This document shows, piece after piece, positions 2,375 to 49,370 of a stretch of 64,000 nt of DNA. Numbering within the stretch: position 1 is the stretch's first letter; every line of letters begins with the position of its first letter. The notes beneath the pieces are model-generated. The model saw only the letters and a program-made list of their open reading frames with translations. It was not told where the DNA came from and ran no database searches. This stretch comes from Mobula hypostoma. Taxonomy: Eukaryota. The DNA is taken from positions 9,672,001 through 9,736,000 of the forward strand of contig NC_086110.1 of the NCBI RefSeq assembly GCF_963921235.1, given 5' to 3'. The position numbers were made by a program, and so were the translations under genes.

Positions 2375-4980
2375 TGCTCAAGCAGGACAGATTAGAGGGC
2401 TTGTCTACTGAGTCCCTGTGGGTGGAGCTGAGAAACAGGAAAGGTATGGCCACATTAGTGGGATTGTATTACAGACCACCCAATAGTCAAAGAAAATTGG
2501 AAGTGCAAATCTGCAGAGAGATAGCAGGCAACTGCAGGAAACATAAAGTTGTGGTGGTAGGGGATTTTAATTTTCCATATATTGATTGGGTCTCCCATAC
2601 TGTTAGGGGTCTAGATGGTTTAGAGTTTGTAAAATGTGTTCAAGAAAGTTTTCTAAATCAATATATAGAGGGACCAACTAGAGGGGATACAATATTGGAT
2701 CTCCTGTTAGGAAACGAGTAGGTTCTGTGCAGGGGAGCACTTTGGTTCCAGTGATCATAACACCATTAGTTTCAACTTGATCATGGACAAGGATAGATCT
2801 GGTCCTAGGGTTGAGGTTCTTAACTGGAAGAAGGCCAAATTTGAAGAAATGAGAAAGGATCTAAAAAGCGTGGATTGGGACAGGTTGTTCTCTGGCAAGG
2901 ATGTGATTGGTAGGTGGGAAGCCTTCAAAGCAGAAATTTTGAGAGTGCAGAATTTGTATGTTCCTGTCAGGATTAAAGGCAAAGTGAATAGGAATAAGAA
3001 ACCTTGGTTCTCAAGGGATATTGCAACTCTGATAAAGAAGAAGAGGGAGTTGTATGACGTGTGTAAGAAGTGCAAGAAAATACTTAAGAAAGAAATCAGG
3101 AGGGCTAAAAGAAGATATGAGGTTGCCTTGGCAGTCAAAGTGAAGGATATTCCAAAGAGCTTTTACAGGTATATTAAGAGCAAAAGGATTGTCAGGGATA
3201 AAATTGGCCCTCTTGAAGATCAGAGTGGTCGGCTATGTGCAGAACCAAAGGAAATGGGGGAGATTTTAAATAGGTTTTTTTGTGTCTGTGTTTACTAAGG
3301 AAATTGGCATGAAGTCTATGGAATTGAGGGAAACAAGTAGTGAGATCACGGAAACTGTACAGATCGAAAAGGAGGAGGTCCTTGCTGTCTTGAGGAAAAT
3401 TAAAGTGGATAAATCCCCGGGACCTGACAGGGTGTTCCCTCGGACCTTGAAGGAGACTAGTGTTGAAATTGCAGGGGCCCTGGCAGAAATATTTAAAATG
3501 TCGCTGTCTACAGGTGAGGTGCCGGAGGATTGGAGAGTGGCTCATGTTGTTCCGTTGTTTAAAAAAAGAATCGAAAAGTAATCCAGGAAATTATAGGCCA
3601 GTAAGTTTAACGTCGGTAGTAGGTAAGTTATTGGAGGGAGTACTAAGAGACAGAATCTACAAGCATTTGTATAGACTGGGACTTATTAGGGAGAGTCAAC
3701 ATGGCTTTGTGCGTGGTAGGTCATGTTTGACCAATCTATTGGAGTTTTTCGAGGAGGTTACCAGGAAAGTGGATGAAGGGAAGGCAGTGGATATTGTCTA
3801 CATGGACTTCAGTAAGGCCTTTGACAAGGTCCCGCATGGGAGGTTAGTTAGGAAAATTCTGTCGCTAGGTATACATGGAGAGGTGGTAAATTGGATTAGA
3901 CATTGGCTCGATGGAAGAAGCCAGAGAGTGGTGGTAGAGAATTGCTTCTCCGAGTGGAGACCTGTAACTAGTGGTGTGCCACAGGGATCAGTGCTGGGTC
4001 TATTGTTATTTGTCATCTATATCAATGATCTGGATGATAATGTGGTAAATTGGATCAGCAAGTCTGCTGATGATACAAAGATTGGAGGTGTAGTAGACAG
4101 TGAGGAAGGTTTTCAGAGCCTGCAGAGGGACTTGGACCAGCTGGAAAAATGGGCTAAAAAATGGCAGATGGAGTTTAATACTGACAAGTGTGAGGTATTG
4201 CACGTTGGAAGGACAAACCAAGGTAGAACATATAGGGTTAATGGTATGGCACTGAGGAGTGCAGTGGAACAGAGGGATCTGGGAGTACAGATACAAAATT
4301 CCCTAAAAGTGGCGTCACAGGTAGATAGGGTGGTAAAGAGAGCTTTTGGTACATTGGCCTTTATTAATCAAAGTATTGAGTATAAGAGCTGGAATGTTAT
4401 GATGAGGTTGCATAAGGCATTGGTGAGGCCGAATCTGGAGTATTGTGTTCAGTTTTGGTCACCAAATTACAGTAAGGATATAAATAAGGTTGAAAGAGTG
4501 CAGAGAAGGTTTACATGGAGGTTGCCGGGACTTGAGAAACTCAGTTACAGAGAAAGGTTGAATAGGTTGGGACTTTATTCCCTGGAGCTTAGAAGAATGA
4601 GGGGAGACTTGATAGAGGTATATAAAATTATGATGGGTATAGATAGAGTGAATGCAAGCAGGGTTTTTCCACTGAGGCAAGGGGAGAAAAAAACCAGAGG
4701 ACATGGGTTTAGGGTGAGGGGAGAAAAGTTTCAAGGGAATATTAGGAGGGGGCTTCTTCACACAGAGAGTGGTGGGAGTATGGAATGAGCTGCCAGACGA
4801 GGTGGTAAATGCGGGTTCTTTTTTAACATTTAAGAATAAATTGGACAGATACATGGATGGGAGGTGTATGGAGGGCTATGGTCCGTGTGCAGGTCAGTGA
4901 GACTAGGCAGAAAATGGTTCGGCACAGCCAAGAAGGGCCAAAAGGCCTGTTTCTGTGCTGTAGTTTCTATGGTTTCTATG
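2375..4980 (+). mobile_element. Young 5'-truncated CR1 LINE (EN C-terminus, RT, 3' UTR)
   Basis: ORFs 2374..2721 and 3460..4788, a (tttctatgg)n tail and TSD GAAAG at 2370-2374 and 4981-4985. Confidence 0.96.
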
Positions 4981-4985
4981 GAAAG

Positions 4986-5900
4986 ACTATTGGGGAGGGA
5001 CGAATGAACAAGGGAATCACGGAGTGAGTGACCCCTACGGATAGGTCGGGAGGGTGGAATTAAAGATATGTTTCATGGTGGGATCCTTTGGAGATGTCGA
5101 ACGTTGCGGAGGACATTGTGTTGGATGCGGAGGCTCATGTGATGGTAGGAACGACGAAGTGAGGGCGGATTTTCGAGAAATAGAGGAAATGCGAGCGATT
5201 GCAGCATTTATGCTGAAGGAAGATAAATCCCGCTCTTTGAGGAAAGAGATCATCTCTGATGTCCTGGCAGGAGAAACCGCATCCTGGGAATGGATGGGAC
5301 AAAGACGAAGAAAAGTGAACACCATGTTTACAGGAGACAGGGTTGGGATAAGGTGCAGTCAAGATAACTGTGGGAATCGGCAGCTTTATAAAAGATTTCA
5401 GTCAACAGTTTGTTTCCAGAGATGGAGACAGACAGATCGAGAAAGGGGAGGAAGGTGTCAGAAATAGACCAACTGAATGTAAGTACTGGGTGGAAGTTAG
5501 AGGCTAAGCAGATGAAATTAACGAGTTCAGCATGGTTGCATGAACCAGCGCCAATGCAGTTGTCAATATAGCAAAGGAAGAGCTGGGTAGTATTACCGGG
5601 AAAGGCTTGGAATATGGACTATTCTGCATTGCCAACGAAAACGGCAGGCATTACTGGTAGCCATGCGGGCATCCTCGAGTTTGGAGAAAGTGGGAGGAGC
5701 CGAAGGAAATGTGTTAAGGGCGTCCAGTTCTGCCAGACGGACGGCATTGGTGGTGGGGAAGCAGTTGGTGCTCTTTTTATTGATAAAGAACTAAGGCCTC
5801 CTTGATGGGGGATAGAAGTGTATAGAGACTGGACCTCCGTGGTGAAAATGAGGCAGTCAGGGCTAGGGAATGAAAGGTTAATGAAGAGATCTCATCTCCT
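4986..5900 (-). mobile_element. Penelope-like element, RT region (part 2)
   Basis: The reverse complement resembles the PLE RT at 61.2-62.1 kb. Confidence 0.7.
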
Positions 5901-5967
5901 GCACTCACTTCTTTAATTATAAAGGTTAACGTGCCAAAGGATTTCTATATGATCCTATCTACCTCAT

Positions 5968-6180
5968 GTTTAAATGTTTGCTTGGTGGTCGCATTGCTTC
6001 AACATTCGCAGTTATATGCATATTTATACAAAGATTATTCTACACCTCTACTTTAGTTAAATCTGTATAACATTTGATAAGTAGCCAAATAACAATTGTA
6101 GAAAACGGAAGCTGTGATAATTCATTACGCCGCAATGGATTTCAGCAGACATAAGAATACTCCAGGACGAAAAGGCACGA
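5968..6180 (+). pseudogene. Inverted, truncated homologue of the ITIM-like cytoplasmic exon plus its upstream intron
   Basis: The + strand matches the reverse complement of ~44775-45010. Acceptor ag at 6100-6101 is followed by KTEAVIIHYAAMDFSRHKNTPGRK, versus KTGAAAAYYAAVDFKRFKHTPERK in copy 2. Confidence 0.8.
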
Positions 6181-6206
6181 CGTCAAGCGCGTATGGCGCT
6201 TTTTAC
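6142..6206 (-). CDS. Candidate terminal exon of copy 1, a diverged duplicate of cytoplasmic exon 1
   Basis: Intact acceptor ttcgttccag at 6207-6216 within a ~310-bp paralogous block. Phase 0 reads VKSAIRA* and phase 1 reads RKKRHTRLTSCLFVLEYSYVC*. Confidence 0.45.
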
Positions 6207-6833
6207 CTGGAACGAAATATAATGACATGAAAGTGCAGCACCATCAACGGAATTGTTAACGCAATGCTTACAAAAATGTTTACACCAGCACACATATTGC
6301 AGCAGCTGCAGAATCTTTTGTTCTGAAAGAATTAATAGTCTGGTTTAAGCGCAATGCGATATGGTGCGCGATAGTTATCTGGTTCCGTCCCAATTCCAGC
6401 GATCTCGGTTCGATTATAATCTCAAGAGTTTCCACATCATCCGAGTAATCATATGTGTTTCTTTAAGGTCCCCAGCGTCCTCCCGCATATCAGTACTGGT
6501 CTTAAATGAATGTTTTAAAACTGCATAACCGTTTGAAAAACTAAAATGATTCTCCTGAGTACGAAATAATGATTACAGCAGTTATCAGAATATATTTTCA
6601 AGACAAGAGATAATTTAGCTCACGTCATTCAAGTGCATATTAAGAAATGTATAAATAAAAATTTAGTGCCAAATACATTTCCTAACACGATTTGAATTGT
6701 TGATTGTGACGGGCTCAATGCGTAAACTATAAAGCCATAAACGGTTCTAATATGACTATCCTTAATTCTGACAAGATAATGTCATCTTTTGAATGGCCAC
6801 AATATATGGCAGTAAATGAATGCATGAACAAAC

Positions 6834-6871
6834 CTCACGTTGATTCGCTTCCGTAAGGCATTCTTCTTTAC
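6834..6871 (-). CDS. IgSF V-C1 receptor copy 1, cytoplasmic exon 1 (GKEECLTEANQRE)
   Basis: Acceptor ttcgttccag and donor GAG|gtttgt are conserved with 45360-45397. An alternative donor CAAC|gtgagg lies 5 nt upstream in the exon. Confidence 0.72.
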
Positions 6872-8017
6872 CTGGAACGAAATATGAAATGAAACTGCAG
6901 CACCATGGGCGGGATTGATAAAGAAATGATTGTAAAAATATTTATAGTAACACACAAATTGCAGCATTTGCAGATTATCTTGTGCTAAAGACACTTATAT
7001 AATGGGTTAAGCCCAACATGTCACATTGGCGCAATAGTAATTCCCATTGCTACACACTACCTGCGATCTCGGTGCGATTGTGATTTCAAATGTTTCCAAA
7101 TCCTACAAGTAATCGCATGTGTTTCGCTCAGGTGCCCCAAAGTCCTCCCACATCCATATTCATACAAGTTAAGTTAAATTACAACTCTAGCTTTCGTGAA
7201 AGTCTATTAGTATCATGGGCTTTCCTTATTACTGGGGAATAAATTAGATAGAAAAAACGGGTCAGGGCAGGCACAAAACACAATAGGCTGAATGTTCTCT
7301 ATCTATATCACTAGTTACAAATTTCGCTGAAAATTCCAAGCAGTTTGGCTTTCACCAATCGCACTTTCTTGTTCCAGAAATGAAAGTAATCGTTTCGGAT
7401 ACCAACGGAATATATGGCTAGAGAATGGGAATAGATAATTAACTTCTACGTCATAGTCTTGCATACACGCCTGAGAATCTTCCTTCCGTTTATATTCCCA
7501 AGTTTATAAACATACCCGGCATTTGCTTTCACGGTCAATCTGTTTGGAAGGGATGACATTTTCCCCATTTGGTTGAGCATTTTGTAATTTATCAAATAAA
7601 TTAATGTAGATTGCGAACACTCTGCCGCTGGTTTGGGCAAAAGGCTACTGACTGAGGGAGTAAATGGGTTTTACTGTCGTTGGTATGTTCCTTCCATCAG
7701 TTTTCGTCGTTTCCACGCGCTGCCATATATAGGTGTGAGGTGCTCACACCGAATTTCCAGATGAACCTTCAACATTTTGGTATGGGTTCGGATCAATCAG
7801 AGTACACAGTCAATGTCCTTTTTTTCTCAGTTTCTGGCAGAGAATAGAATGCCTAGTTTCTGTTAAATACTGTATTTGAAATATGTTGGCTAGACATTGA
7901 AACCCCAGTTTCAATTATACAAAAAAACCAGTGACGATTGTGCGGTCCCGAAAGAAGGCACTGAAATATTTTCTTTTGTCCTGTTTGTGGATTTGGAAAA
8001 TGTTCTTTAAATCTTAC

Positions 8018-8131
8018 CTTTACTTTCCTGCTTTCGGCACTGGGTCCCAATGGCGATCATTAGCACTAGGATCGCCAGTCCACCCATTACAAAACGAGGA
8101 ACCCAGGAAGAAAGAGGTTTGCCAGAGGAAC
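8018..8131 (-). CDS. IgSF V-C1 receptor copy 1, transmembrane exon (GSSGKPLSSWVPRFVMGGLAILVLMIAIGTQCRKQESK)
   Basis: 114-nt phase 1-1 exon (atcctccag|GT...G|gtaag) with a hydrophobic stretch followed by a basic stop-transfer. The paralogue at 46527-46640 has the same length. Confidence 0.88.
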
Positions 8132-8621
8132 CTGGAGGATATAAGTATATACGTTATGCAAAGCTGCGAAGTAAATACATAACTCTGTTTTTGGGAGGAG
8201 GTGAGGGTGGCTGCTGGTGTTTGTGCTGATGGTGGCGTTGGAATGCGTAAATAAGCGAATAAGTTCGCAGTACAGAACGGATTAAAAATACGAGAAAAGA
8301 AAATAAAACGAAAAGCGTTGTTCTTATATTAGACAGAGGAATTGATCTCGGCCTCCATGTAACTCATGGCTGCTCGATTGTACATTATAGGTTTATGGGT
8401 GGATAGGAAATAACTTCCAAAGTCTAAGAAAAATTTTACCAGTCGAAGATTGAAAATTTATTAACTTATAGCTTGCTGTGTCATAAACCTCGCTTCACTG
8501 CAACGCCAACATGTCAGAGATCACAATCTTTCCATTCATTTTCAAAGGGTAGCAATTTAGAAATATATATTGTAAACTTCCCTAAGTGATAGTCGTAGTG
8601 AACTCCGCACCGGTAGGAGTT

Positions 8622-8625
<4 letters not shown>

Positions 8626-8675
<50 letters not shown>
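8626..8675. repeat. (GT)n(GC)n microsatellite in a copy 1 intron
   Basis: Directly visible. An equivalent repeat lies at 48581-48626. Confidence 0.95.
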
Positions 8676-9076: not shown

Positions 9077-9379
9077 CTTGGTTAGATTTGGAAATAGAAT
9101 AGACTGCTACCGCTGAAATATTGAGGGAGACATGAGACACCAAACAGGTATAATTTGTGTCATTCTGGACCGGCTGTGTCTCCTTCAAGTTGCTCGAAAC
9201 CACATAAAGTCCCTCGGTATTCTTCCTTAACTTGGTCTGTATGCCTAATGCTATTTTAATGCCATTTTTATACCAAGTAAGCGAGAAATTCTTGGGATAA
9301 AAGGCAGATGTTTCACACACGATAATGAAAGTTGTAGCTGAATTCCTATTCGCGGAAATCATCAGTGGAGTTGGAACTG
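9077..9379 (-). CDS. IgSF V-C1 receptor copy 1, C1-set exon
   Basis: 303-nt phase 1-1 exon (ttcgcag|CA...G|gtacga) with C1 motifs VCETSAFYPKNFSLTWYKNG, GLYVVSSNL and YTCLVSH. Contained in ORF 9000..9476. Confidence 0.93.
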
Positions 9380-11165: not shown

Positions 11166-11486
11166 CATTCACTTTTAGAAGTGAACCAGTTCTATTTCTT
11201 GCAGACAGTCCTTTGCGGGTCACTGAACAGAAATACAGTCCAGAATCTTGGATCATTACTTGTTGCAACTCAAAGTACCAAGTTCTTGTACCTCTCAGAC
11301 CAGAACTTTTTCTGTTGCCGGTGCCTGTCCGTTGGTAATTATTCTCGCCCTGTTTCCACCAATGCACTTTCGTCCAGGATTGATCCTGAGAAATGGGAAA
11401 TAAGCAGTAGAACGTGACGTTCCCTCCTTTGGATACAACCGCTTCTTTGGGCAATTGAGTTACACTGAACGTACTCTGATCCGCAG
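11166..11486 (-). CDS. IgSF V-C1 receptor copy 1, V-set exon with joined J-like end
   Basis: 321-nt phase 1-1 exon (ttgacag|CT...G|gtaag). It encodes B-strand Cys (TFYC), C-strand Trp (VHWWK), DSGLYFC and a G-strand NRTGSLLKV. Contained in ORF 11152..11493. Confidence 0.93.
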
Positions 11487-11645: not shown

Positions 11646-11694
11646 CTATGTAAATGTTCCCACTGACTGCCAGGAGGAGCAACATACTTGACAT
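11646..11694 (-). CDS. IgSF V-C1 receptor copy 1, exon 1 (signal peptide MSSMLLLLAVSGNIYI)
   Basis: ATG at 11694-11692, hydrophobic 16 codons, phase-1 donor G|gtacag. A paralogous exon lies at 54525-54576. Confidence 0.85.
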
Positions 11695-20290: not shown

Positions 20291-21129
20291 ATCACTGCAA
20301 AGTAAAACATCGGCAACAACATTTCAGAGATTCAATAGGCTCCCATTTTGATATTTTATTTAATATTATTCTTTTGAAAATTATGTGCAATATGTAACAT
20401 TGCCAGAATGTTGTCCTGTTCTGGGATGCATATAGCCTTCATTCAGTTAAGCGTAATTTAAGAACTCATGATTCACAGTCGATTACTGAACCAAATTCCA
20501 GATTTATCAGGTTATGCTTAAAGATTAATATGATGTTTTGTAGAAAAAGATGGATATATTGAGGCAAAATAATAGTTTACAGTTTGCTGTTTCATATTTG
20601 ATTATTACACATAAATATTGTGTTATCTTATTTGGTGTTATATAGGAACGACAATTTGAATGTTACAAGTCATGTCCTTTATGCAAAATTAATACCGTGC
20701 GGAACATTGTCATATGAGGGGAAATAATGAATGAAACGCTGGTATTCTGATTTTAAGGAAGTGCTATTCTGGCGTCCCCACTTCTAATCAACTGTATAAT
20801 ATTTACGACAAGATATTGCACTGTGGCTGTCATTGAACATTGAACTGTGCTGGCATTGGCGTAATTGTAGTTTAAATGGAAATTAAACAGGTTTTGGTTT
20901 ATGTGGATGTATCAATACAATATTATATGAAGTGTCAAAGGTGCTTGAAGTGTTTTCCAATAATAACCTCGTATATTCAAAAATAACACTGTCACGGAAG
21001 ATTAGATTAGTTTGGCTTGGCGGAACACTTTTCGAGACTGACACTTTCCCAACGCAAACGAAACTATTTGAGGCTGATGATTTTACCTAGCCCTGTAACT
21101 TACTAGGGAAGTGAAATCTAATCGAAATT

Positions 21130-23001: not shown

Positions 23002-24839
23002 TGTCATGGTCCGGTTCATGAATTCGGCGTTCCGGTTCACAGTCCGATCCGTGTACTCCAGACTCTAGGTCTTCCAGCTGTCCCTTCTTTTATTTGGGCT
23101 TAATCATTCGCACCTGATGCTCGTCTTGGGGCTGGGAATATAAGTGGTCCTGGGTTCGAGTGTGGTTGCTGGTTCGTCTTGTCAGTATCCCGTCCTCGCC
23201 TCCGTGGGGTAAGTCAGGCCATCTTTGCCGTTACCCTACGGTTGGATCTGTCCCTTCCTTTCCCCTTCCATCTGTAGCCTTGTCTGCAACCTGTGTCTGG
23301 AGCCTTGCCTGTAACCTGTGTCTAAAGCCTTGCCTGCAACCTGTGTCTGGAGCCTTGCCCGCAACCATGTCAAGTTCAAACACCAGAGCGAGACCGGAGT
23401 CTCGCTGTGTCAAGATAAGGAACTGTCTATCTTTGAGTTGGAACTGTCTCTGTGTGAACGCCTTCGCTAGGTAGGTCCGGCCATCTGCCGCTACCGAATG
23501 TTGGGAACCGTCTCTGTGTCCACTGCTGCTCTAGGTTGGTCCGGCCGTTTGCCGCTACCTAGTGTAGAGAACTGTCTCATCGTGTTCAGCATTCTGTGTA
23601 TGAGTCCCGGCCCTACGTCCTGTTCCCAAGGAGGGGTCCCGGCTCTGTGTTCCATGTTTCTTTCTCTCAAGTCCAAGGCTCCGCGTTCCCATGCTCTAGA
23701 CCAAGGCTCCGAGCGTCCAGTCCTCGTCCAAGGCTCCAAGGTTCCTGTCTCCCAAGACCACGTCATGTCTTCGCCTACTTCCGGAGTTCGAGCCGGAGTC
23801 AAGACCCAGGTTTTGGGTCCGTGTCCATTCTCTGGCTCAAAGTCCGAACCCAAGCTTCGTCATGTCCTCGCCTCGAAGAACCCAAGCCTCATCATGTTCT
23901 CGCCTCGAGGAACCAAAGCCATGAAGAACCCAAGCCACGAAGAACCCAAGCCACGAAGAACCCAAGTCTCGAGGAACCCAAGCCACGAAGAACCAAAGCC
24001 TCGAGGAACCCAAACCATGTCCAGTCCTGTAGCCACGTCATGTCCTCATAGTTCCGGGGTCCGCACCCAAGCCTCATCATGTCCTCGCCCCGAAGAACCC
24101 AAGTCTCGAGGAACCCAAGCCACGAAGAACCAAAGCCTCGAGGAACCCAAACCATGTCCAGTCCTGTAGCCACGTCATGTCCTCCTAGTTCCGGGGTCCG
24201 CACCCAAGCCTCATCATGTCCTCGCCCCGAAGAACCCAAGTCTCGAGGAACCCAAGCCACGAAGAACCAAAGCCTCGAGGAACCCAAACCATGTCCAGTC
24301 CTGTAGCCACGTCATGTCCTCATAGTTCCGGGGTCCGAGCCCCAATCAAGATCCAGGTTCTGGGTCCTTGTCCAGTCTCCGTCTCGGAGTCCGAACCCAA
24401 GCCTCGTCATGTCCTCGCCCCGAAGAACCCAAGTCTTGTCATGTTCTTGCCTCGAGGAACCCAAGCCACGAAGAACCCAAGTCTCGAGGAACCGAAGCCA
24501 CGAAGAACCAAAGCCTCGAGGAACTCAAACCATGTCCAGTCCTATAGCCACGTCATGTCCTCCTAATTCCGGGGTCGAGCCCCAGTCAAGACCCAGGTTC
24601 TGGGTACTTGTCCAGTCTCTGGCTCGGAGTTCAAGCCCAGGCTCCTAGTTCTCAGTTCCTAGTCCTGGTCCCGCAAGCCTATCCAATGCCCTAGCCCAAT
24701 TTTGTGTTCTTATCCCACTTCCTAGTCTGCATCCAGTCACGTCCCTAACTCTAGTCTCTAGCCCTATCCTGTTCCTAGTACTTCAGTGTCTGTGTCTTGC
24801 ATTTTGGTGCACTCCCAGCAACCCCACCCCCCCATGACA
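23002..24839 (+). mobile_element. Solo LTR with internal minisatellite expansions
   Basis: TGTCATGG...CCATGACA ends and a 5-bp TSD ATCTA/ATCTG (one mismatch). Related to 29169-30388. Confidence 0.82.
23870..24570. repeat. Higher-order tandem repeat (~137-bp units built from GAAGAACCCAAGCC-like subunits) inside the LTR
   Basis: Visible repeated blocks, reflected in the repeated peptides of ORFs 24079..24306 and 24216..24566. Confidence 0.85.
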
Positions 24840-29168: not shown

Positions 29169-30388
29169 TGTCATGGTCCGGTCCGTGAAGTCCGCATTCT
29201 GCTTCATGGTCCGATCCATCGTTCCTCATTCCAGGTTTACCAGTTCTTCCCGGTTTCCGTTGAGGCACCTGATTCTCGTTTGGGCTGCCTTCATAAATAG
29301 ATTCAGGATTCAGCCTCTGGCTGCTGGACTGTTCCTTTCACCTTCCACTTCATCTTCCTACTATAGCTTGCTTGAGTCCTCCACCTGAGGCCTCTGCCTG
29401 CAACCTCCGCCTGAAGTCTCAGCCTGCAACCTCGACCTGGAGCCTTGCCTGCAACTTCGGCATGAACCTGTATCGTTCTACAGCCGGAGCAAGACCGGAG
29501 TCATGCTGTGTCTAGGTAAGGAACTGTCTATCGTTCTTTGGAACTGTCTCTGTGTCCACGCCTTCGCTAGGCAAGTCCAGCCGTTTGCCGCTACCTTGTG
29601 TTGGGAACCGTCTCTGTGTCCACGCCTTCGCTATGTAGGTCCAGCCGTTTGCTGCTACCTTGTGCTTCTCTCTACGTCCTGTTCCCAAGAAGAGGTCCCG
29701 GCTCTATGTTTCATGTTCCTGTCTCCCAAGACCAAGTCTCTGTGTTCTGCGTTCCTGTCTCCCAAGACCAAGACTCTGTGTTCTGCGTTCTTGTCTCCCA
29801 AGGCTTCGGGGTCTCGTCCTGTCCTTGTGCCTCGCCCAGTGCAGGAGTACCTCGTCTAGTCCAAGCCACGTCCAAGTACCTCGTCTAGTCCAAGCCACGT
29901 CCAACTACCTTGTCTAGTCCAAGCCACGTCCAAGTACCTCGTCTAGTCCAAGCCACGTCCAATTACCTCGTCTGGACCAAGCCACGTCCAATTACCTCGT
30001 CTAGTCCAAGCCACGTCCAAGTACCTCGTCTAGACCAAGCCACGTCCAATTACCTCGTCTAGTCCAACCCAAGTCTTTGGGTTCTCGTCCTGTGCAGGAG
30101 TTCCACGTCCAGTCCTGTAACCTAGCCACGTCCAGATCTGTAGCAATGTTTTGTCCTTGCCAGGATCTGGAGTCCGAGCCCGAGTTAAGACCCAGGTTCT
30201 GGGTCCTTGTCCAGTCTCTGGTTTGGAGTCCAAGCCCAGGCTCCTATTTCCTAGTTCCTCGTCCAGGTCCCGTTGTTCTAGACCAAGTCTGTGTCCTGGC
30301 ATGTCCCTAACTCTAGTCATAGTCCTGTTCCTAGTACTTCAGTCTCGCTTTTGGGTCCGCTTCCAGCGCGCCCCCCCCCCCCATGACA
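29169..30388 (+). mobile_element. Solo LTR, same family as 23002-24839
   Basis: TGTCATGG...CCATGACA ends and a perfect TSD AGTTT (29164-29168 and 30389-30393). Confidence 0.88.
29846..30066. repeat. 29-bp minisatellite, ~8 copies (AGTACCTCGTCTAGTCCAAGCCACGTCCA)
   Basis: Units recur every 29 nt from 29851 to 30054 with no spacers. Confidence 0.93.
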
Positions 30389-44100: not shown

Positions 44101-44754
44101 CCCCACGAATTGGCCAGGTGAAACTGAAAACCACAGTTCAAATATATGAAGTCAGTAATTCAGAACAGAGAAGAATATTGCTTTCATCAAATGTGCAATA
44201 AATCCATGGTATTCACCATGCCTCGCGCAGTCATTGAGTATAGGAACTGCAGAAGACGACACAATTTTACATACAGAGCGATAAAGTAATGTGTGTCTAT
44301 AGTAACATTTGCCTTTGTAGTGAAATAAGACTTCACTAACTGGCGGAGTATATACAAGAAAAAATATCGATTCCGATTTATGTTACTTATAGTTCCGCGT
44401 TGTTCTAAGGCCTTACCAAGGACGCGCCCTTTCCATCTATAATGGCGTGGCAAATTTCATCTTATTTTTGATGTACAACCACAGTTTCTCCCATATGTTT
44501 GTGTCTCTGCAGCTCGGCATATTCTGTGTTACTTATGCAAATCCTCCTGTTGTTTTTTCCAGTCAATGCCAAGGTCGCATACGACAACTCGTCACTTGAA
44601 TGTTCTTGGACTGCCTGTAAGCAATATTTTTTTTTAAAAAAACGTTAATTAATTGCGCTTCAGTCTTTGTACGTTGCTGTTCATGTCGCATGTCAACCAC
44701 TTCTTCAGTTGTTTCAATCCCTATCTTTTTCGTTGGCTTATTACACAGCCTTAC

Positions 44755-44856
44755 CTGAACAAACGCGATTTTTTCACGATGGCTTTTTCGTTCTGGAGTG
44801 TGCTTGAATCTCTTGAAGTCTACAGCGGCGTAATATGCAGCCGCGGCTCCCGTTTT
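44755..44856 (-). CDS. IgSF V-C1 receptor copy 2, ITIM-like cytoplasmic exon (KTGAAAAYYAAVDFKRFKHTPERKSHREKIAFVQ)
   Basis: Phase-0 acceptor ccatgcag|AAA matches the upstream phase-0 donor, and there is a strong donor CAG|gtaagg. The frame also stays open to 44563, so this could be a terminal exon. Confidence 0.72.
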
Positions 44857-45359
44857 CTGCATGGTTTGGGATGAACAATTGTTACTTGGTTACTTAGCTT
44901 AATTTGTTCAGTATTATTATCAAATGTTAAACAGATTTAACTGAAGTAGAGATATATGTATCAGTGTAACTACGAATGTTAAGGGACTGTGGTCATTAAT
45001 CAAACATTCAAAAATATCAATGTTAGTCTTAATTGAATGTTTTAAAATGCACGACGGTTTCAAACTCTAAAATGATTCTTATGAACACAAAAGAAAATTA
45101 TGGCAGTTATCAGGGTACATTTTCAAGACAAGAGATAATTCAGTTTACGTCATTTAAGTACATATGATGAAATGAATAAAGTAATTAATTAGTGTTAAAT
45201 ACTTCCCTTAACACGATTTGAATCGTTCATTGTGACCTGCCAAATACGTAAACCATGCAAAAATAAACGAATCTAATGTGACTATCATTAATTTTGTCCA
45301 GATCAGATCATCTATTGAATGGCCAGAATATTTGGCTCTATAATTATACATGAACAAAC

Positions 45360-45397
45360 CTCAGGATGATCCGCTTCTGTAAGACATGCTTCATTAA
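45360..45397 (-). CDS. IgSF V-C1 receptor copy 2, cytoplasmic exon 1 (VNEACLTEADHPE)
   Basis: 38-nt phase 1-0 exon with splice sites conserved with 6834-6871. Confidence 0.75.
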
Positions 45398-45837
45398 CTG
45401 GAACGAAATATAATGTCATGAAATTGTAGCACCATTGACGGAACTGTCAACACAATGATTACAAAGATGTTTATAGTAATACACAAATTGCAATATCTAC
45501 TGAATTTCTTCCGTTTAAGATATTTATAGACTGGTTTAAACCTAACTTGTCACAGTGGAGCAATAGTTATTCCATTACCTCACAATTGCAGAGATCTCGG
45601 TTCGATTTTGATCTCAGATGCTTCCACATCCTCCGGGGAATTTCATGTGTTTCTTTCTCTAAGATACCCTAGCGTTCTTCCTCATTCAAACTCATGCAGG
45701 TTAGCTGAAGTTGTAATTCTAAATTTCCTGAAGTGTGTGTTATTAGCAGGAGAATCGTGAGCGTACCTTGTTACAAGGAAATCAGTTGGAACATTGGATC
45801 AATTGGCATCCTGTCAGATCAAGCAGAACACACAACA

Positions 45838-46526: not shown

Positions 46527-46640
46527 CCTTCCTTTCCTGCTTTCGGCACTGCGTCCGAATGACGAACATTAGCAGTAAGATCACAAATCCAGCCAATGTA
46601 CCACCGGAAACCCAAATGGAAAGAGATTTGCCAGAGGAAC
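46527..46640 (-). CDS. IgSF V-C1 receptor copy 2, transmembrane exon (GSSGKSLSIWVSGGTLAGFVILLLMFVIRTQCRKQERK)
   Basis: 114-nt phase 1-1 exon (cttccag|GT...G|gtaag) with an uncharged hydrophobic core. Confidence 0.88.
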
Positions 46641-49067: not shown

Positions 49068-49370
49068 CTTGGTTAGATTTGGAAATAGAATAGACTGCCA
49101 CCGCTGAAGTATTGAGCGAGACATGAGATACCATGCAGGTATAATTCCTGCCGATCTTATCTGGCTGCATCTCTGTCAAGTTGCTCGAAACCTCATAAAG
49201 ACCTTCGGTGTTCTTCTTTATATTAGTCTGCGTGCCCAAAACTATTTCAACACCATTTTTATACCAGGTAAGCGAGAAGTCCTTGGGATAAAATGCAGCT
49301 GTTTCACACACAATAATCAAGGCGGTAGTTGAATGCTTTTTCGCGAAAATCTTCAATGGAGTTGGTACTG
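49068..49370 (-). CDS. IgSF V-C1 receptor copy 2, C1-set exon
   Basis: 303-nt phase 1-1 exon (ttccacag|CA...G|gtacga) encoding AVPTPLKI...VCETAAFYPKDFSLTWYKNG...YTCMVSH. Confidence 0.93.

Follow-up and report, generated by a model that had tools for sequence, protein, structure and literature searches.

A putative activating-type SIRP-like receptor gene with a rearranged 3' end in the devil ray Mobula hypostoma

Two receptor gene copies in the window

The window, a 64,000-nt stretch of the Mobula hypostoma genome, contains two copies of one gene, both on the minus strand and about 75% identical when the window is compared with itself. Copy 1 lies at about 5.9–13 kb, with the gene part at 5.9–11.7 kb, and copy 2 lies at about 44.4–59.4 kb, with introns packed with retrotransposons. 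Each copy encodes a V-set domain (Pfam, E 4e-6 for copy 1 and 2e-8 for copy 2) with a germline J-like motif (GTGSLLKV) at the exon end, and each has one C1-set exon (Pfam, tblastn, splice models). The closest solved structures by sequence were SIRP-alpha and SIRP-gamma, with the best match to 2wng (SIRP-alpha, E 1e-18). A search of NCBIfam gave no matches, as expected for a library of prokaryotic models. Protein-representative searches from the C1 exon found the receptor family in many sharks and rays, and we found no description of it in the literature searched.

Homology between the two copies picks up again at 20291–20445 versus 59454–59610, which is about 7 kb further upstream of copy 1 and past LINE insertions at 14.6–19.9 kb. 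The duplication thus took in more than the gene itself.

Copy 2, the inhibitory-type reference gene

Spliced by eye, copy 2 has seven exons, and its product matches letter for letter a 360-aa M. hypostoma RefSeq protein (P0158) that carries the name [quoted passage not shown], that is, SIRP-alpha-like. Exons are given in transcript order.

54525–54576, minus strand: leader exon (splice model)
54067–54387, minus strand: V exon (splice model)
49068–49370, minus strand: C1 exon (splice model)
46527–46640, minus strand: transmembrane (TM) exon (splice model)
45360–45397, minus strand: cytoplasmic exon 1 (splice model)
44755–44856, minus strand: Z exon in normal orientation, KTGAAAAYYAAVDF...AFVQ (acceptor cag, donor gtaagg)
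44462–44614, minus strand: terminal exon with the ITIM LSYATL and the ITSM-like TEYAEL (splice model)

The tyrosine motifs of an inhibitory member are thus present in the terminal exon of copy 2, and a degenerate motif, AYYAAV, is found in its Z exon. The motif is degenerate in rays, but the same exon in a hexanchiform shark still reads ILHYTALDL, a canonical ITIM, and for this reason the label of ITIM-like exon that the original prediction gave to Z is a fair one, although the exon is internal and penultimate rather than the terminal ITIM exon. By blastn, the segment 43000–44782, which includes the terminal ITIM/ITSM exon, has no homologue elsewhere in the window.

Rearranged blocks at the 3' end of copy 1

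The 3' end of copy 1 is made up of four blocks (inverted Z, Y', X and Y), all of which blastn placed within a few bases of where they had been predicted to lie. A high-copy repeat adjoins inverted Z.

6872–7153, minus strand: Y, the intron block before cytoplasmic exon 1 and the template of Y' (blastn)
6488–6833, minus strand: X, the intron that follows cytoplasmic exon 1 (colinear with 45015–45359 of copy 2)
6207–6487, minus strand: Y', an intron copy with the duplicated acceptor atatttcgttccag (blastn)
6183–6206, minus strand: new terminal coding exon, GTA AAA AGC GCC ATA CGC GCT TGA = VKSAIRA-stop
5966–6180, plus strand: inverted Z, antisense to the gene, with an exon remnant at 6102–6180 (blastn, global alignment, tblastn)
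5331–5964, no strand: high-copy repeat adjoining inverted Z (depth about 3000x, loose ends at 5964)

X and Y together align with copy 2 on the same strand (6487–7200 versus 45014–45732, 75.5%, E 1e-139, blastn). Y' corresponds to the last ~280 nt of the intron before cytoplasmic exon 1, together with the acceptor and the beginning of that exon. Its segment 6190/6203–6488 matched the Y of copy 1 itself at 6852/6867–7153 (74%, E 6e-43, blastn) and the Y of copy 2 at 45394–45685 (74%, E 2e-43, blastn). Positions 5966–6176 matched the reverse complement of 44782–45015 at 62% with gaps (E 1e-13, blastn), and the cores of this match were 6046–6080 (94%) and 6124–6176 (75%). In a global alignment, inverted Z comprises an intron part of about 135 nt and, after it, the exon's first 79 nt. 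The flipped exon has the AG acceptor and the open plus-strand frame that the original prediction had described: the acceptor is kept (ttgtAG/AAAACGG), the exon starts at 6102, and the plus strand reads KTEAVIIHYAAMDFSRHKNTPGRKG. Queries with P0158 and with P0001, an ITIM-bearing Mobula protein, matched 6102–6176 on the plus strand (tblastn). The inverted exon is nearest to the Z exon of P0001 (17 of 25 residues, KNTPGRKG being identical), and it retains a shark-like I-x-H-Y.

An AG acceptor and an open plus-strand frame would also be expected if inverted Z were an exon of a separate plus-strand paralogue with its other exons outside the window. This is very improbable, as tblastn of the window found no other family exon on the plus strand, the upstream 6 kb is all retrotransposon, and the exon, fused to Y', is missing its donor and the final ~27 nt. 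Furthermore, the intron homology of inverted Z ends exactly at the breakpoint where X starts. This common breakpoint of the inverted Z end and the X start corresponds, within about 3 nt, to the ancestral point 45012–45015. All junctions (~5965, ~6180 and 6487) lie in cis; Y' copies Y from 660 bp away, and Z is inverted in place.

We compared the junctions with sequencing contigs. One Logan contig from a DNA run of the same organism covers 5840–8618 with 0 differences and at the depth of the single-copy flanks; this run is probably from the assembly's own sample. A contig under a second organism label, from another sample and study, is colinear over 5800–8618 with 49 differences (~1.7%). All three junctions are present in reads and common to a close relative. 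An assembly artefact might be suspected in a region so rich in repeats, the more so as the best DNA holder is probably the sample behind the assembly, but with single contigs at single-copy depth spanning each of the three junctions in two organisms, taken from different studies, it is extremely improbable. A perfect (TG)22 microsatellite lies at 8626–8669, in the intron between the C1 and TM exons of copy 1, and the Logan contigs break there.

The repeat next to inverted Z is cut off exactly at the 5964 junction, since its other genomic copies continue past this position. A Pfam search of 5331–5891 left the repeat unclassified. It contains a candidate poly(A) signal, ATTAAA, at 5912–5917 on the minus strand. 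The fragment 5903–5964, which ends abruptly at 5964, matches an internal part of the RT region of a LINE at 57379–57441. Two histories would give this arrangement: the repeat was there already and the rearranged segment became joined to it or inserted into it, or a LINE truncated at its 5' end inserted exactly at the breakpoint.

Predicted product of copy 1

The gene model for copy 1 has six exons (leader, V, C1, TM, cytoplasmic exon 1 and Y'), with canonical AG/GT sites and an open frame of 282 aa. The five exons upstream of the new terminal exon are as follows.

11646–11694, minus strand: leader exon, MSSMLLLLAVSGNIYI (splice model)
11166–11486, minus strand: V-set exon, germline VJ (Pfam V-set; RNA joint 9379/11166)
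9077–9379, minus strand: C1-set Ig exon (Pfam C1-set, E 8e-11; borders match an RNA contig of a near-identical paralogue)
8018–8131, minus strand: TM exon, intact (Arg237 codon CGT at 8094–8096, GGT in copy 2)
6834–6871, minus strand: cytoplasmic exon 1, (G)KEECLTEANQRE (donor gtttgt)

When spliced from cytoplasmic exon 1 (phase 0), the Y' exon is translated in another frame than the exon it was copied from, giving VKSAIRA, such that the protein ends in ...NQRE-VKSAIRA-stop. The stop codon, TGA at 6183–6185, comes a few bases ahead of the start of the antisense remnant of Z. Read-through from cytoplasmic exon 1 into X gives VCSCIHLLPYIVAIQ..., the same as in the Hypanus isoform P0005. An activating member is marked by a basic residue in the TM and a short, tyrosine-free tail, and copy 1 has both: Arg237 lies in the membrane helix, close to its outer end, and the 29-residue tail contains no Tyr.

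These results bear on two parts of the original prediction. Its proposal that the duplicated acceptor supplied a new terminal exon is borne out by the open splice from cytoplasmic exon 1 to Y' and by the same tail in a Hypanus sabinus RefSeq isoform. Its proposal that the event removed the inhibitory motif holds in part. Copy 1 is separated from the tyrosine-motif exons, but the flipped exon is only the weaker, penultimate one, and near copy 1 the window has no main ITIM/ITSM exon at all.

Paired ectodomains

Near-identical ectodomains on opposite signalling ends are found in copy 1 and P0001. Identity between the two is 97% in V (over the 30 aa available), 90% in C1 and 70% in TM plus cytoplasmic exon 1. 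The P0001 gene probably lies about 26 kb before the start of the window, where we place it because the gene lengths match; the neighbouring position of the pair would follow from this placement. In two RNA-like Mobula runs, contigs fell on the V and C1 exons only. They confirm the exon borders, including the joint 9379/11166, and carry P0001 residues (L>V, N>D, T>N and E>D in C1). Since the C1 residues are of the P0001 type and the TM part is only about 80% like copy 1, we assign these contigs to the partner gene. The upstream exon of the RNA contig (27 nt) was not found in the window.

Compared with copy 1, the partner-gene RNA contigs were identical at 322 of 324 nt in the V exon (99.4%), about 96% in C1 and about 80% in TM. 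This gradient of identity from V to C1 to TM points to either gene conversion or a recent partial duplication, by which the ligand-binding ends of the activating and inhibitory pair would stay alike. The V domain of copy 2 is 95%–96% identical to those of short-tail proteins of Hypanus and Hemitrygon. As copy 2 V resembles the short-tail V while copy 1 V resembles that of P0001, each ectodomain type occurs with both signalling ends.

Short-tail relatives in rays and sharks

The copy 1 model has an annotated counterpart in a stingray. It matched Hypanus sabinus P0174 (XP_059849422.1) at 85.1% without gaps, both proteins having 282 aa. RefSeq names P0174 "signal-regulatory protein beta-1-like isoform X1", and the protein ends in ...GKEECLTEANQREVKSAIRV (NQREVKSAIRV). 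The Y'-type tail is found in H. sabinus in both P0174 and P0003. Because the principal isoform P0174 ends in VKSAIRV, the new last exon is used in this related ray, and since the VKSAIRA/VKSAIRV tail is conserved, the rearrangement predates the split of devil rays and stingrays. Judging from the protein tail, inverted Z itself may be present in Hypanus as well. The event thus appears old and common to stingrays, rather than a change particular to copy 1 as against copy 2.

The orthologue also bears on whether copy 1 could be an unexpressed or decaying gene in Mobula, its intact frame a leftover without present function. No protein model for copy 1 was found among Mobula proteins, RefSeq included, and none of the RNA contigs was specific to copy 1, a weak test since these contigs come from small runs only, with nothing covering 5991–7900. 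On the other hand, each of the six exons has kept an open frame and canonical splice sites through long divergence, the match to the annotated orthologue is gapless, and the V exon identity to the expressed partner suggests ongoing gene conversion. We therefore consider decay of copy 1 distinctly unlikely.

A second short-tail gene (P0151 and P0152, from Hypanus and Hemitrygon) has MKRTVST or MKRTIST followed by a stop after the same exon. These endings differ from VKSAIRA by possible single-base changes at 6 of 7 positions, and for that reason they probably represent the same exon in an older paralogue. Another isoform of this second gene reads through into X (VCSCVHIAPYNLVIQ), matching the X frame of copy 1. 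All four ray short-tail proteins (4/4) have Arg at the TM position where the ITIM-bearing proteins have Gly. Sharks also have Arg at this position, with other tail endings (P0164, P0165 and P0018; GNEA-stop and VAVREC-stop). Activating members are therefore older than rays, and the founding step may have been something other than the rearrangement. The different tails of sharks and rays suggest that tail losses in this family were repeated and independent. The TM and cytoplasmic exon 1 of ray short-tail genes are closer to those of ray ITIM-bearing genes than to those of shark Arg-TM genes, which points to fresh conversion within rays. Among shark proteins, activating/inhibitory pairs fall inside single 90%-identity clusters (P0164/P0176 in Scyliorhinus and P0165/P0178 in Mustelus).

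Age of the Y' block

Alignment of Y, Y' and the Y of copy 2 gave a star-like pattern, with 41 sites shared by Y and copy 2 Y, 33 by Y' and copy 2 Y, and 28 by Y and Y', and with identities of 70%–75%. Because the three are equidistant, the age of Y' is about that of the divergence between the two signalling ends. It is neither a recent copy of copy 1 Y nor detectably derived from copy 2. The original prediction had held that Y' in places resembles the Y of copy 2 more than that of copy 1 and had considered an exchange between paralogues. Neither idea finds support here: the identities were 71.7% and 70.0%, the site patterns did not differ significantly, and their star-like form (41/33/28) does not indicate an inter-paralogue origin. 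Such an age agrees with a tail that is conserved in Mobula and Hypanus. In the three-way alignment of Y, Y' and copy 2 Y, no invariant run is longer than the 14-nt acceptor, and this is modest evidence that the Y' acceptor is under constraint.

The age of Y' also bears on a different account, in which the rearrangement is secondary debris. According to this account, the gene was already of the activating type, with the TM Arg and a tail ended by read-through into X or by a stop, scrambling of the 3' exons came later, when they were out of use, and the Y' exon was taken up as one alternative end among several. Several short-tail isoforms exist in Hypanus, including the read-through into X and one ending in "Y-stop", the shark Arg-TM members end otherwise, and the observations fit either order of events. 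However, Y' dates back as far as the divergence of the activating and inhibitory 3' ends, its acceptor is the best-conserved stretch of the block, and the Y'-derived tail is that of Hypanus RefSeq isoform X1, with a probable homologue in the second activating gene. Additionally, the TM and cytoplasmic exon 1 of ray activating genes are nearer to ray inhibitory genes than to shark activating ones. We regard later scrambling as unlikely.

A model for the origin of copy 1

We favour the explanation that copy 1 is an activating-type member of a paired SIRP-like V(J)-C1 family and was made by a rearrangement at its 3' end, and we give this whole explanation a probability of about 0.7. In the model, a complex rearrangement would have struck the 3' end of an inhibitory-type gene in the ancestor of devil rays and stingrays. 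The intron, acceptor and start of cytoplasmic exon 1 would have been duplicated about 660 bp downstream to give Y', the next block, with the ITIM-1-like exon Z, would have been inverted, and the last exon, with the canonical ITIM and ITSM, would have been lost or displaced. The copy 1 transcript would then consist of the leader, V, C1, TM and cytoplasmic exon 1, followed by a splice to the duplicated acceptor at 6207. From there, the Y' exon would contribute seven codons in a shifted frame (VKSAIRA) up to the stop at 6183–6185, and the 3' UTR would extend across the antisense remnant of Z and on into the repeat beside it.

The predicted product is a type I membrane protein of 282 aa with Arg237 and a tyrosine-free tail of 29 residues, which would not recruit SH2 phosphatases. 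Association with adaptors by means of TM charge is a reviewed rule (PMC1440944), and copy 1 may signal through an ITAM adaptor bound by its arginine. It may also oppose its inhibitory partner P0001, the ectodomain of which is almost identical. The rearrangement may be what removed inhibition and caused the activating switch.

How the blocks were joined allows more than one reading. Template switching fits the common breakpoint and the templated filler of 300 nt from 660 bp away. A two-break inversion accompanied by a templated insertion would account for the layout just as well, and the layout could also be the ragged 3' edge of the gene-making duplication. Candidate junction motifs (TATCA versus TATTCA at Y'/X and a CGTG-like motif at Y'/Z) were chosen post hoc from sequence that is about 25% diverged.

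A bolder version of the model is that the whole activating lineage of stingrays and devil rays was founded by the lesion now seen as the Y'/inverted-Z scar. One template switch at the edge of a gene duplicate would have cut off both ITIM exons and made a substitute terminal exon, one G-to-C change (Gly to Arg, in the TM) would then have completed the switch, and the module would later have been recombined onto other ectodomains. We hold this version to be doubtful and offer it only tentatively. If it is true, the 3' UTR of the activating transcript carries an antisense copy of the ITIM-1 exon of its partner.

Relation to known receptor systems

The ray genes resemble mammalian SIRP genes in several ways. 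Both have a V-set domain with a J-like GxGTxLxV motif followed by C1-set, an inhibitory tail with ITIM/ITSM or an activating form with a basic TM residue and a short tail, and pair ectodomains that are nearly identical; RefSeq likewise calls the ray proteins SIRP-alpha-like and SIRP-beta-1-like. There are also differences. Mammalian SIRPs have two C1 domains whereas the ray genes have one, and the mid-membrane Lys of the former contrasts with an Arg near the outer helix end in the latter. To our knowledge, no comparable rearrangement has been described for SIRP-beta.

Vertebrate immunity has made repeated use of paired activating and inhibitory receptors, which an arms race with pathogens has shaped. 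The origin of the activating twin is known in detail for only a few mammalian families, in which it involved point mutations and recombination. Activating KIR and Ly49 receptors arose from inhibitory genes and then spread by recombination, and the functional shift in KIR took 5–7 point changes (Abi-Rached & Parham 2005, PMC2213150). The ray genes are similar in that an activating form would derive from an inhibitory one through a charged TM residue and ITIM loss, and in the recombination onto other ectodomains, since ray V/C1 types 1 and 2 each occur with both tails. Unlike in KIR, the ITIM exons of the ray gene would have been removed by duplication of an exon block and inversion, and the stop codon comes from a frame-shifted exon copy. 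If our main reading is correct, the DNA of a cartilaginous fish keeps a readable structural scar of the making of an activating receptor. Duplication and inversion would account for both the loss of inhibitory exons and the origin of the new stop, in a tail that is conserved across two ray families. The KIR/Ly49-style sequence of functional shift followed by shuffling may operate in elasmobranchs also, and this gene would be a testable, concrete example of it.

Complex duplication-inversion rearrangements among human structural variants are attributed to replication template switching (FoSTeS/MMBIR). The ray locus shares with these several cis junctions within about 1 kb, a short templated copy beside an inverted segment and one ancestral breakpoint used twice, and its junctions may also have short similar motifs. 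It differs in that the ray event is ancient, fixed and in an immune gene, with junctions that are about 25% diverged.

Other repeats in the window

Two LINE-type retrotransposon copies, at 2837–4984 (plus strand) and 56782–58958 (minus strand), are 92.7% identical and contain long RT open frames. The first lies in the repeat block to the left of the rearrangement and the second in an intron of copy 2. Both copies postdate the gene duplication by a wide margin. GC-rich tandem arrays separate the receptor copies at 23270–24650 and 29380–30080, with periods of 16/32/137 nt and 29/64 nt, and the 137-nt unit is 98% identical among its repeats.
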